From contig NC_068998.1 in NCBI RefSeq assembly GCF_001194135.2, positions 54,333,927 to 54,367,866 of the forward strand: DNA of 33,940 bases. The letters run 5' to 3'. Made by a program: the position numbers and the translations under genes. Numbering within the stretch: position 1 is the stretch's first letter; every line of letters starts with the position of its first letter. Positions 12,382-29,290 of this stretch are shown piece by piece. The DNA is from Octopus bimaculoides. Its lineage: Eukaryota. The notes below the pieces were generated by a model that was not told where the DNA came from, did not search any database, and saw only the letters and a program-made list of their open reading frames with translations.

Positions 12382-12589
12382 CATTTGAACTGAGAGTCCC
12401 AGCCTCTTGCATAGCTGCACTGACTGTAAATGCTGCCATAGATTTGCTGTTCACATAAGAATTGCTGACGAGGAACTCCGATAGATCACGAAGACCAGTA
12501 AAACCACGTTCCAACAACTTCTCCGCCCACTCACAGACCAGTTGGCAGGAAGCATTGAACAGCTCATCTCGGCCATAGCTGTCATCGTC
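12382..12589 (-). CDS. RFX7: RFX5/7-like exon (208 nt, phase 0 to 1): conserved post-DBD helical region
   Basis: Acceptor tattctttcag| and donor G|gttggt (weaker, but its phase fits the next exon). Encodes DDDSYGRDELFNASCQLVCEWAEKLLERGFTGLRDLSEFLVSNSYVNSKSMAAFTVSAAMQEAGTLSSN, similar to RFX7 ACRLVCEWAQKVL...[21 protein letters not shown] (recalled). Confidence 0.9.
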
Positions 12590-13613: not shown

Positions 13614-13698
13614 CCTCAATTTTCTTGGAGAGATTTCCAACTCTGGTAAGACGGGTGGCTGTACCTCCAGCTTCTTGCGTATGCCACTGTACACATAT
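13614..13698 (-). CDS. RFX7: RFX5/7-like exon (85 nt, phase 2 to 0): end of RFX domain plus PxLPxL motif
   Basis: Acceptor aaaaccag| and donor AGG|gtaatt. Encodes (K)YVYSGIRKKLEVQPPVLPELEISPRKLR, which completes SKY.YSG.RKK across the intron. Confidence 0.93.
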
Positions 13699-14348
13699 CT
13701 GGTTTTAGAATTAAGGAATGGTCGATTAACCAAAGACAAGAAACAAGAAGAATTACAAGTTTTAACCTCAGGCCTATTGTNNNNNNNNNNNNNNNNNNNN
13801 NNNNNNNNNNNNNNNNNNNNNNNNNNNNNNNNNNNNNNNNNNNNNNNNNNNNNNNNNNNNNNNNNNNNNNNNNNNNNNNNNNNNNNNNNNNNNNNNNNNN
13901 NNNNNNNNGTTATATCCGCTGCAACCCCCATTCCCCCAAGCCTCTCCTATATTTCTCTCCATCATTATTTACTAGTCACCTCAGCCCAAACCCCTGTATC
14001 ACTTCACTTATTCTCACCCCCCCACCCCAACGTCCTTCGAGTACGTACCCCAACCCATCTTCACCACCACCATCTCTCTCTCACTAATGACCACTCTCTC
14101 TCCCTTACTCTCCGACCCATGTGTGCTTCCTTGATCCTACTCTCCAACTCACACAGCTTTCTCTTCCAACTTTCTACACCTCAGCAATTTGAGGCCATTG
14201 CTTCATGATGGCATCAGAAAATGAGAAGAAGAGATTCTTGAAGCAATGCTTAATGCCAACAACATCGACAACAACAACAACAACAAATGAAACAGCAGAA
14301 CAGTCGAAAGAAGGTAGAACTTTTGGTATTTGCAGCATGAAAGGATAC
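13699..14348 (-). other. U12-type (minor spliceosome) GT-AG intron
   Basis: 5' splice site GTATCCTTT (14348-14340). Branch-site TTCCTTAAT (13718-13710) lies about 11-13 nt before the 3' AG. There is no polypyrimidine tract between the branch site and the AG (ttctaaaaccag). Confidence 0.9.
13781..13908. other. Assembly gap (128 N) inside the U12 intron
   Basis: Run of N. Confidence 1.
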
Positions 14349-14465
14349 TTTGATTGACCTCTCTGGCCTAAACGTCTTGGCTTGATGTTTGGAAAGACAC
14401 ATTTCATAATCTTGCCGAAGTCAGCAGTGCTGAGTGGACGAAGGGAGAGGCTTTCGCAATAGTTT
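14349..14465 (-). CDS. RFX7: RFX5/7-like exon (117 nt, phase 2 to 2): core of winged-helix RFX domain
   Basis: Acceptor gttattttccag| and donor AA|gtatccttt. Encodes [38 protein letters not shown](K), the diagnostic RFX FGK.....FP....RRLG.RG.SKY motif. Confidence 0.96.
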
Positions 14466-14500: not shown

Positions 14501-14531
<31 letters not shown>

Positions 14532-14744
14532 ACATCATTTCTTGAAAAAATATATTACACACATACATTGGTGCCACCCAGATTTCTTGAAGAAAAAGAT
14601 TACAGCTAAGACTCCTGAAAGAATTTTCTTTGTGCTGCTGTTGCTTGTGCACAGCTGGATGTGTAGATATGGGATTCAGTTCATAAACATGAGGTTCAGG
14701 GTTCTATTCTGACTGAGTGACATATTTAATCTGTTGAGTGTATA

Positions 14745-14762
14745 TGAATAATAATAATAATG

Positions 14763-14808
<46 letters not shown>

Positions 14809-14815
14809 TAATCAT
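14745..14815. repeat. (AAT)n microsatellite abutting the donor of exon 14824-14952
   Basis: Directly visible. Confidence 0.95.
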
Positions 14816-14823
14816 GGTAATAC

Positions 14824-14952
14824 CTATATTCTTCATAAACTTCTTTTTTGGGTAGACAGATATCACAGTTCTCTTCCAAGTGGCTCTTAATCCATGTGAA
14901 TGCTTGAGTCTGTTCAACACGGCTTGTTGTATGCAGAGATGAGGTCGGACTG
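14824..14952 (-). CDS. RFX7: RFX5/7-like exon (129 nt, phase 2 to 2): start of RFX DNA-binding domain
   Basis: Acceptor tctttttttctag| and donor AG|gtatta. Encodes SPTSSLHTTSRVEQTQAFTWIKSHLEENCDICLPKKEVYEEY(R), matching the RFX AFxWI..LEE...LPK.EVY.EY pattern. A tandem TAGCAG acceptor makes the 5' edge ambiguous by 3 nt. Confidence 0.92.
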
Positions 14953-15629: not shown

Positions 15630-15720
15630 TGACCCAGTACTTGATTAGCATTTTATGTTACTGGCCTTGAAAGGAAGAAAGGGTAAGTTGACCTTGGCAT
15701 GATTTGAACTCAAAATGTAA
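15630..15720 (-). mobile_element. SINE family B fragment
   Basis: gacccagtacttgattagcattttatgttactggccttgaaaggaagaaagggtaagttgaccttggcatgatttgaactcaaaatgtaaag. Confidence 0.65.
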
Positions 15721-19239: not shown

Positions 19240-19430
19240 GGCTTCAAATTTTGGCACAAGGCAGCAATTCTGGAGAAAGGTGGGGCAAGTCTATTACAAC
19301 AACCCCCAATGCTCAACTGGTATTTATTTAATTGACTTTGAAAGGATGAAAGGCAAAGTTGACCTCAGTGGAATTTGAACTCAGAACGTAAAGATGGATG
19401 AAATGTTGCTAAGCATTTTGCTTGGCATGA
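19240..19430 (-). mobile_element. SINE family B copy
   Basis: ggcacaaggcagcaattctggag...actggtatttatttaattgactttgaaaggatgaaaggcaaagttgacctcagtggaatttgaactcagaacgtaaagatggatgaaatgttgctaagcattttgc. Confidence 0.82.
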
Positions 19431-19976: not shown

Positions 19977-20065
19977 AGTGTGAGTTGGTCATCATTGGTG
20001 GCGCCAGTAGGAAGTTTGAGGTACAACAATAACTTTTCTACATCAGATAACTGGTTCACATCTTG
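19977..20065 (-). CDS. RFX7: RFX5/7-like transcription factor, first identifiable coding exon (89 nt, phase 0 to 2): N-terminal RFX5-type helical domain
   Basis: Acceptor ttttgttttacag| and donor CT|gtatgt. Encodes QDVNQLSDVEKLLLYLKLPTGATNDDQLT(L), resembling the RFX7/RFX5 segment [21 protein letters not shown] (recalled). Phase matches the next exon. Confidence 0.9.
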
Positions 20066-23900: not shown

Positions 23901-24579
23901 GGAGAGTTTCAGAAGCTGTTCACAGCAAATGCCTTTCTGTAGGTTTTGGGTGTTTTTCTTTTCCGCTGTTCTCAACTAAATATTACCGAATCCTGCAGTA
24001 GTAATGCACAAGGATACTACCACACTGAAAGCACAGGTGAATGTGACTGCTCCTCCGCTTGCTAGAAATAGCAGTCAAATCTCCTTTAAATCATATCCTG
24101 CTACCTAAAAGAAGGTTGGATAATGTTGGCTTAGGTGAATGAAATGGAACAGTGATGAATAGATCTGCTCAGTTAAGGTTGACCTGGGGCTAAAACAACA
24201 ACAACAACAACACCATATACAGGTAAAATAAACAGGATTTGAGTAAACTAGAGATAAATTGGATTGGTAATTAGTGGGAATAGTTTAAGAAATGAAATAA
24301 ATTCGTTAGCTGCGAAGAAGAGGTAAAATGTTATGTTTTGACTAATTAGCTGATTTGGTATTTATTTGGCAAAGTGTAAGACAATCATATTAAACACCTT
24401 TCTTGTGCTTGTCCTGGCTTTGAGTTCAAATCGTGCCACTGACAACCCTGGAAATGGTTATAGCATCACTCAAAGTGCCTTGTGGTAGTTGTTCCTGCAC
24501 TTTGCGATGATGTCAAGCCAAGGAGAGAGTGATACACACACACACACACACACACAAATACATACATATATATATGATG

Positions 24580-26770: not shown

Positions 26771-27829
26771 ATGAAGAACTTGGTAATAAAAAAGACTAAT
26801 AAAAAAAAAGACAAACAAACAAAAAGAAAGGAAAGCAGAATAAAAATAAATATGAACGATGGCTAAGGATGACAGCTGAAATGCAAGAAGACTAGTTTTT
26901 CATTATGTAATTGGCAGTTTTTGCATTTGGAACCTAAACAAAGTTGCTTTAGGCATTCATCATGTCTGGTGGGTGGTGAAATAAAATAAAATACCCCACC
27001 CACCCCCTCTCCTAGCATGCAAGATTATATAATGTGTTAGTGAGATACAACTGTGTATTTCATTGGGATAACATTTCTTTGGATGTCAGCTTGTCTTTAA
27101 GGTTTTCTTGAAAAATAAATCATTATTTCATATCATCATCATCCTCCTCATTTAACATCCACTTTTCTACGCTTGCATGGGTCAGATGGAATTTGTTGAG
27201 GCAGATGGAATTTGTTGAGCCGTATTGGGTTGCTGTCCAATGACTGAAACCAGTAAAAGACCAAAAGAATATTCCTCACAATCATGTGAGGTTGTCTGAG
27301 AAGTTGAGTATCTGTCAGCAAGAACTAACAATTTATGGCAATCTTCATGAATGATGATGTAAAGAAAGTTTGGAGAAAAAAAGAAAAAAAAAGAAAAGAA
27401 AAGAAAGAAATGAAGTTTAGTAGTTTATTTGATTCTGAATTATTCTCATTGGTAAAAAGTCTAAACCAGGATCTCAAGTAAATGTAAACTCGTGAGAATG
27501 AATTTCCGTAATTGGCAAAGATATTCATAAAGAAAAAGAAAAGAAAGAAAATCACATGAGCTAACGATGCAGAAGACACTAATTAAATTGGAGAAATAGC
27601 AGTGACGTGCCTCGGTCCAATATGGTTGGTTATGTCTTCATAGAAGTCAGGAATGACATAGTGTCCTCCTCCTCTCTACACATTCCTCCCCACTTACCTG
27701 ACACTCCTTTTGTAAAAGAGTGACATCCTGCCTGAATAAGAAAACTGTCCAGACAAACCTATCTGGCCAAGTTAATAATTGATACTGGTTACAAAACAAG
27801 GAAATTAGAAACACATAGTAATAATAATA

Positions 27830-28210
27830 ATAATAATAATAGTAATAAACCGTTTCCACTATAGGCACAAGGCCAGCAGTTTTGGGGGAGGAGGAGTAAG
27901 CAATTACATAGACTCCAGTACATGACTGGTATTGATTTTATCAACCCCAAAAGATGAAAGGCAAAGTGAACCTCAGCAGAATTTGAACTCAGAATATAAA
28001 GATGGACAAAATGCTGGCACGCATTTTGCTCAGAGTTCTACTGATTCTGCCAGCTCTGATCCTTTCTGATATAGGCACAAGGCCTGAAATATTGCGGTGA
28101 GGGGGCCACTTAATCAGATCAACACCAGTACTCTATCGGTACTTTATGCTATTGACTTTGAAGGGACGAAAGGTAAGTCTGACCTCAGCAGAATTTTAAC
28201 TTGGCACATA
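27830..28210 (-). mobile_element. Two tandem SINE family B copies with (AAT)n tail
   Basis: Two starts of tataggcacaaggcc (~27860 and ~28070), each followed by the gaaaggcaaag..gacctcagcagaattt core. Confidence 0.82.
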
Positions 28211-28455: not shown

Positions 28456-28799
28456 ACAAATCATAACTTTTAATTAAATTTTTAAAATTCTCATTAAACT
28501 GTTCAGTGAACCAGCAAAGAATTGTATAAGTAAGAAAGCTGTCATATTTGACAGCCCAAGTGGTTATTACAGTAGAATGTGTAATGGGGGGACATCGTTT
28601 TTCAGTGGGTGTCCTGCACTATCACATTTACAAATTTCTAATACTTTTGCAATTAAATATGTAAAGCTACGTCTTTAGGTACAAAACTTCATCAAAATTG
28701 TTTTTACCTGTCATTTTGAATGGAAGTGTGCCGTTCCTCAAAATTAATAAAAATAAAACTGTCATAATTTTTGACAACACAGATAATGGTACTTCTACG

Positions 28800-29290
28800 G
28801 CTAATAATTATAATAATAATAATTATAATAATAATAATAATAATAATAATAATCCTTTCTACTATAGGCACAAGGCATGAAATTTTGGGGGAGGGGAGTA
28901 ATCTATTCAACCCCAATGTTTCACTGGTACTTAATTTATCGACCCTGAAAGGATGAAAGGCAAATTTGACCTTGGCGGAATTTGTACTCAGAAAACACAA
29001 AGCTGATGAAATGCTGCTAAGCATTTTGCCTGGTGTGCTAACAATTCTTCCAGCTTGGCACCTTTATAATAATAATAATAATAATAATGATGATGGTGGT
29101 TTCTGGTTTAATCACAAGACTAGAAAAGGTGCAGGGAAGTGTTGTAGCCAATGAATGCCAGCACCGATTGCTTGGAACTTTATTTCATTGACCCTAGGTG
29201 ATTGAAAGGCAAAGCAGACCTAGGTTGCATTTGAACTCAGAACATAGAATCAGAACAAATACTGCATTTAATGATTCAGCCAGCTTGCCA
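28800..29290 (-). mobile_element. SINE family B copy with (AAT)n tail (28800-29060) plus a second decayed copy (29160-29290)
   Basis: (aat)n cctttctactataggcacaaggcatgaaattttgggggagggg...gaccctgaaaggatgaaaggcaaatttgaccttggcggaatttgtactcag. Confidence 0.82.

Follow-up and report, generated by a model that had tools for sequence, protein, structure and literature searches.

A predicted GT-AG U12-type intron in the DNA-binding domain of an RFX5/RFX7-type gene of a lophotrochozoan

The DNA analysed here, referred to throughout as the window, is a stretch of 33,940 nucleotides that carries on its minus strand a gene for an RFX-type transcription factor. A lysine codon within the DNA-binding domain of this factor is split by an intron, and the sequences at the intron's borders raise two questions: which of the two spliceosomes would remove it, and how long an intron of that kind has stood at this codon. 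In the model of minor splicing, U11 and later U6atac pair with the 5' splice site, and U12 pairs with the branch motif. Here, we describe an analysis of the intron's splice signals, of the gene that contains it, and of the homologous junction in other animals. We put at about 0.93 the probability that this is a U12-dependent GT-AG intron and that it lies in the minus-strand gene for an RFX5/RFX7-type transcription factor of a lophotrochozoan, most likely a mollusc. Furthermore, we present evidence that the position of the intron is shared across bilaterian animals and that its GT-AG ends are a derived state.

The exons of the gene were mapped by tblastn with proteins of Haliotis, Ylistrum and Mytilus, followed by inspection of the borders. 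Homologues were gathered by a full HMMER search and a profile search, and a word-index search with the 111-residue domain found one Logan contig protein. The following six exons, all separated by introns, were obtained (a slash marks an exon-intron border here and below):

19977..20065, minus strand: exon 1, part of the RFX5_N domain (QDVNQLSDVEKLLLYLKLPTG...; PF18326, 28.4 bits, cut-off 25)
14824..14952, minus strand: exon 2, first half of the RFX domain (SPTSS...EVYEEY)
14349..14465, minus strand: exon 3, upstream of the U12-type intron, coding as far as the first two bases of the Lys codon; its acceptor, ttattttccag, is of the U2 type
13614..13698, minus strand: exon 4, downstream of the U12-type intron, encoding YVYSGIRKKLEVQPPVLPELEISPRKLR; its donor, AGG/GTAATT, is of the U2 type
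12382..12589, minus strand: exon 5, the conserved CQLVCEWAEKLL... region that follows the DNA-binding domain
1695..8509, minus strand: exon 6, very large, with an open frame of 2,271 codons up to a 690-N gap and no stop seen before that gap

The reading frame is continuous through all six exons, and the homologue of exon 5 adjoins the homologue of exon 4 in a related contig, Logan ERR3431203. The spliced peptide matches the RFX winged-helix domain PF02257 (E = 2.6e-30, positions 1-78 of 79) and the RFX5 structure 8zjr (E = 8e-35), and it most closely resembles long RFX7-like proteins from Haliotis, Ylistrum and Mytilus, with 65-74% identity across the domain. By its domain content, an RFX domain with an RFX5_N domain upstream, the gene is assigned to the RFX5/RFX7 subfamily. 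The large exon also holds a conserved C-terminal motif, DLPNVNYMGNAPNVDL, at 2423-2355. Several introns and flanks of the gene contain copies of a dispersed repeat family of about 170-240 bases and 68-80% identity (28701-29070, 27815-28196, 19253-19425, 9872-10022 and 15665-15715), which is probably a short interspersed element; ARAGORN reported no tRNA-like part in it. Simple repeats lie at 14501-14538, where (ATC)12.7 closely precedes the acceptor of the 14465 exon, and at 14747-14822, where (AAT)22 stands just after the donor at 14823.

The intron between exons 3 and 4 occupies 13699..14348 on the minus strand, a length of 650 positions as scaffolded, with 522 known bases. Its parts are the following:

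14348-14340, minus strand: 5' splice site GTATCCTTT, the first bases of the intron, preceded by exonic AAA
13781-13908: assembly gap of 128 N, wholly intronic, 81 bases upstream of the acceptor
13751-13731 (approximate), minus strand: pyrimidine-rich run cttcttgtttcttgtctttgg, upstream of the branch site and more than 30 nt (30-50 nt) from the AG
13718-13710, minus strand: branch-point sequence TTCCTTAAT
13711, minus strand: presumed branch A, the second A of that motif, 12 nt from the last intron base, G13699
13700-13699, minus strand: 3' splice site AG, in a 3' intron stretch that reads ...cgaccaTTCCTTAATtctaaaaccAG

From 14348 onward the minus strand reads GTATCCTTTC. The upstream exon ends in ...AGA GGT CAA TCA AA, with 14349 as its final base, and the downstream exon opens at 13698 with A TAT GTG TAC AGT GGC ATA CGC AAG AAG, so that the Lys codon is split AA/A, in phase 2, and the predicted joining of 14349 to 13698 continues the RFX DNA-binding domain into YVYSGIRKK. 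All of the features by which U12 introns are recognised were found here: a donor of the form /RTATCCTT, a branch site of the form TTCCTTRAY, a spacing of 10-15 nt between branch point and intron end, GT-AG or AT-AC termini, and no polypyrimidine tract between branch site and 3' splice site, where the sequence reads tctaaaacc. The donor retains nine of nine U12 consensus bases and the branch site eight of nine; the final base of the latter is T, C being commoner, and the same T-ending variant occurs in listed human minor introns such as that of PPP2R2A (AATTCCTTAATA). The first-pass annotation of this DNA had described the donor, the branch site, a spacing of about 11-13 nt, the missing polypyrimidine tract and an interrupted Lys codon, and in each of these respects its account was borne out. 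A (CAA)10 repeat on the plus strand at 14257-14286 is (TTG)n as read within the intron.

The strength of these signals was measured with weight matrices built from the donors and branch sites of 77 human minor introns, those in the first part of Table S2 of Olthof et al. 2019 (PMC6717393), and applied to all 66,178 positions of the window on both strands. Under this human-derived matrix the donor, AAAGTATCCTTT, scored 14.9 bits, which is the highest value among the 66,178 positions and above 71% of the 77 training introns. The branch site, CATTCCTTAATT, scored 11.3 bits, ranking third of 66,178 and first on the minus strand, above 44% of the training introns. Both scores lie inside the range spanned by the 77 training introns. 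The 12-mer AAAGTATCCTTT was also found in a listed mammalian minor intron. Exact matches to RTATCCTTT and TTCCTTAAY in the window (both strands) numbered two and one respectively, and each count taken alone is about that of shuffled sequence. The weight-matrix scoring that the first-pass annotation had named as a check thus speaks for its U12 assignment.

The remaining introns of the gene bear different signals. The four other donors of the RFX7-like gene (CT/GTATGT, AG/GTATTA, GG/GTAATT and TG/GTTGGT) scored from -4.6 to -23.5 bits under the U12 matrix, and long pyrimidine tracts stand at the acceptors of the other four mapped exons (first, second, fifth and sixth). The gene as mapped presents the usual picture, one predicted minor intron among major ones. 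Three further sequences also fit the donor matrix well, at 13.4-14.1 bits, namely GTAGTATCCTTG, ACAGTATCCTCT and AGCATATCCTTT, at 24017 (minus), 24920 (plus) and 2742 (minus), the last of them within the large coding exon; no branch motif was seen at a fitting position for any of these three. Rfam and ARAGORN scans of the window returned nothing, and no minor-spliceosome snRNA is present in the window, a result that is uninformative for the rest of the genome. Minor introns are relatively plentiful in molluscs (Larue and Roy 2023).

The age of the intron was addressed by reading the genomic DNA of seven homologues at the homologous junction, those of six bilaterian genes and of Nematostella. 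The bilaterian junctions read as follows:

Lottia gigantea: donor ..TCA AG/ATATCCTTT; 3' end TTCCTTAACTAGTCATAC/A TAT TGC
Ylistrum balloti: donor ..TCC AG/ATATCCTTT; 3' end TATCCTTAACACAACTTAC/A TAC TGT
Ptychodera flava: donor ..TCC AA/ATATCCTTT; 3' end TTCCTTAACAAATTTGGTGATAC/G TAT TGT
Tetraodon RFX7: donor ..TCA AA/ATATCCTTT; 3' end AGCCTTAACTCCTCCTCAC/A TAC TGT
Larimichthys RFX7: donor ..TCC AA/ATATCCTTT; 3' end ACCTTAACTCCTCCTCAC/
Gymnogyps (condor) RFX5: donor ..TCG AA/ATATCCTTC; 3' end GACCTTAACCCTGCCAAAC/G TAC TGC

Each of the six bilaterian genes has a single U12 intron in phase 2 at the identical Lys/Arg codon, and all six introns have AT-AC ends and a branch A that lies 10-15 nt short of the intron end. 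The Larimichthys protein named 'RFX5' proved to be RFX7 on reading its locus, and RFX5 was then confirmed with the condor gene. Published catalogues agree with these readings: Table S2 of Olthof et al. 2019 (PMC6717393) lists minor introns of human and mouse RFX5 at CAA/GTATCCTTG, with GT-AG ends, and of mouse Rfx7 at TAA/ATATCCTTT, with AT-AC ends, and according to a 2026 preprint, RFX5 and RFX7 'are encoded by MIG', that is, by minor-intron-containing genes (bioRxiv 10.64898/2026.08.20.745718). The RFX5/7-like gene of Nematostella vectensis (5056-5100 of the fetched locus) reads AAT TCC AAG TAC TGC TAT without interruption, and the intron is absent at K/Y; the next intron of that gene lies about 90 bases on, at GATAAG/GTAAGG. 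A closer relative of the window's species is represented by Logan ERR3431203 (226-270), in which an exon about 85% identical to that of the window (by reading) is preceded by TTCCTTGACTCTTTCTAC, so that the intron ends in AC, and by TTCCTTGAC 10 nt before the exon. Going by this AC 3' end alone, the intron of the relative is presumably AT-AC.

The window's intron is the orthologue of the known U12 intron in vertebrate RFX5 and RFX7. On the deuterostome side, a U12 intron at this codon and in this phase is found in a hemichordate and in both vertebrate paralogues, and on the lophotrochozoan side in a gastropod, a bivalve and the window; the intron therefore most likely dates to the bilaterian ancestor. 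The first-pass annotation had made a bilaterian origin depend on a vertebrate U12 intron at the same codon, and had pointed to the class of the intron at GxSK/Y in vertebrates and molluscs; the phase-2 introns of fish RFX7, condor RFX5, the hemichordate, the gastropod and the bivalve all match, the U12 signature is present in six of the six genes fetched, and the listed minor introns of RFX5 (human and mouse) and Rfx7 (mouse) have matching flanking bases. The intron's absence from Nematostella reflects either a gain on the bilaterian stem or a loss in that cnidarian, between which one species cannot decide.

These comparisons point to AT-AC as the ancestral form and to the GT-AG ends in the window as a derived subtype switch, which needs two changes, A to G at the first base and C to G at the last. 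The intron of ERR3431203 ends in AC and that of the window in AG, and the switch would thus be recent enough to separate these two relatives. Bird RFX5 has an AT-AC intron and mammalian RFX5 a GT-AG intron, so the switch arose separately in mammals and in the window's lineage. Switching of U12 introns from AT-AC to GT-AG was described by Burge et al. 1998, as cited in Lin et al. 2010 (PMC2831892), and the latter authors counted 36 intron clusters with such a switch.

The alternative that survives best, although we consider it very improbable, is that the major (U2) spliceosome now removes the intron, by way of its GT-AG ends, a branch point at a distance and the upstream pyrimidine-rich run, and that the U12-like motifs are relics. 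The termini are indeed GT-AG, which the major spliceosome also uses, and not the ancestral AT-AC, and the pyrimidine-rich run at about 13751-13731 could serve U2 splicing, so that some use of this intron by the major machinery is conceivable. The change from AT-AC to GT-AG has, moreover, been regarded as a step toward U12-to-U2 conversion, which may take as little as one further change, at +5 (Lin et al. 2010, PMC2831892). The signals themselves argue against such a conversion having occurred in the window. The AG has no adjacent pyrimidine tract, and the U12 donor and branch motifs are intact and correctly spaced, which would be unexpected had selection for U12 recognition lapsed. With A at -1, T at +4 and C at both +5 and +6, the donor could pair with U1 at only about four positions. 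The consensus for U1 donors is CAG/GTAAGT. Assignment to the U12 class, as the first-pass annotation had proposed, agrees with the donor, the branch site, their spacing, the missing tract, the termini and the orthology with known U12 introns alike.

A scaffolding artefact is slightly less probable still. It would mean that the flanks of the gap come from different copies or haplotypes, or that an extra exon lies within the gap, and that the true intron structure is not the one given here. Donor and acceptor do stand on different scaffold contigs, on opposite sides of the 128-N gap, and a second gap in the same gene, of 690 N at 1005-1694, likewise speaks of a fragmented assembly. Against this, the two sides of the gap share a strand, stand in the expected order and code for residues that follow one another within one domain, and a single intron occupies the homologous place in six of six orthologous genes. 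An exon hidden in the gap was rejected, since the protein sequence is complete across the junction: Pfam RFX_DNA_binding positions 1-78 of 79 align in one stretch, and the RFX5 (8zjr) and RFX1 (1dp7) domains align across the junction with no gap there. Furthermore, the splice signals each stand on their own side of the gap, and a wrong join would alter the length of the intron and not its class. The gap inside the intron therefore makes the length of 650 an estimate only and leaves the splice signals and the reading frame untouched. A chance match, finally, is not credible, because the top-ranking donor and branch site, two independent motifs, fall exactly at exon borders that were set independently by protein homology, and the orthologues carry them as well.

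We infer that the minor spliceosome removes the window's intron. Recognition of the donor /GTATCCTTT would fall first to U11 and then to U6atac, and base-pairing of U12 with TTCCTTAAT would bulge out the branch A, 12 nt from the AG at the 3' end. The neighbours of this intron would be left to the major spliceosome. Only after splicing would the mRNA code for YVYSGIRKK, the last strand of the winged-helix RFX domain. If the intron were retained, the frame would remain open for 57 codons past the Lys and end at a TAG at 14176-14174 (minus), before the gap; the first-pass annotation had expected a stop soon after the junction, and in this it was mistaken. The retained product matches the Pfam RFX profile to position 72 of 79 only, and it would thus lack the last strand, which follows the wing loop. 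From an unspliced transcript the predicted product is a domain that breaks off after the Lys and runs on into 57 unrelated residues before a stop.

By analogy with vertebrate work on zebrafish rfx7b, this splicing step may limit expression and make it dependent on the minor spliceosome. The U12 intron of rfx7b was retained after u4atac knock-down, and forced retention of that intron led to loss-of-function phenotypes as severe as those of other knock-downs (bioRxiv 10.64898/2026.08.20.745718); the position of the intron is not given in the text of the preprint. Should retention prove to be regulated, as has been reported for rfx7b in zebrafish, molluscs may possess the same lever. A much bolder proposal, and one that we regard as rather unlikely, is that the U12 intron in the wing has served as a post-transcriptional gate for more than half a billion years, such that the level of DNA-binding-competent RFX7-type protein follows minor-spliceosome activity in all bilaterians, and that the window's lineage, in its GT-AG state, stands one or two mutations from escape through U2 conversion.

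The intron has left its mark on existing annotation. A set of 262 gene models of homologues was retrieved, and 32 of them have ...S[KR]YP... in place of ...S[KR]Y.Y.... The U12 donor R/TATCCT translates at this phase as K/R-Y-P, which indicates that these 32 models entered the intron or ended at it; vertebrate RFX7 and RFX5 are represented among them, as are Magallana and Mytilus. The Lottia model LOTGIDRAFT_138119 has QDIHT in place of RGQSR by way of invented splice junctions (RRLGQQDIHTYCYSG), and in Larimichthys crocea the RFX7 gene, which bears the label RFX5, is annotated as two separate models that divide at the U12 donor. Gene predictors limited to U2 splice sites break or distort the gene at this point, and labelling the intron as U12 gives the correct DNA-binding domain. 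Two Mytilus galloprovincialis models (P0234 and P0236) read ...RGQSR-YPFSKIHFVLVSLTLHT-YCYGG, with 17 extra residues that look like a whole U12 intron translated in frame, YPF fitting ATATCCTTT and SLT fitting TCCTTAAC. If this is so, the Mytilus intron is only about 51 nt long and stop-free, and its retention would insert 17 residues in the wing with no truncation.

The intron described here is an old, ordinary and well-conserved U12 intron, in a subfamily of which RFX5 and RFX7 are already catalogued as minor-intron genes. What is new is modest: a lophotrochozoan instance, evidence at the level of DNA that the position is shared across Bilateria, and a derived GT-AG state in this lineage. 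The closest known counterpart is the U12 intron of vertebrate RFX7, which lies in a gene of the same subfamily (RFX5_N and RFX domains with a long C-terminal tail), at the same GxS-K/Y codon and in the same phase, with the same RTATCCTTT donor and a branch site 11-12 nt from the 3' end, features confirmed in the genomic DNA of Tetraodon and Larimichthys. The vertebrate RFX7 intron differs in its AT-AC termini, whereas the window's intron is GT-AG. The mammalian RFX5 intron shares the GT-AG termini, and its exonic flank, CAA/GTATCCTTG, fits ..S-K in the same phase; the intron of condor RFX5 lies at the identical codon. RFX5 itself occurs in vertebrates only; it is a short paralogue, about 600 residues long, with a role in MHC class II expression, whereas the gene in the window is long and RFX7-like. 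As in the known cases of subtype switching, the terminal bases alone differ and the donor and branch motifs are kept, and the window's intron would represent one further such case, in a lophotrochozoan lineage.
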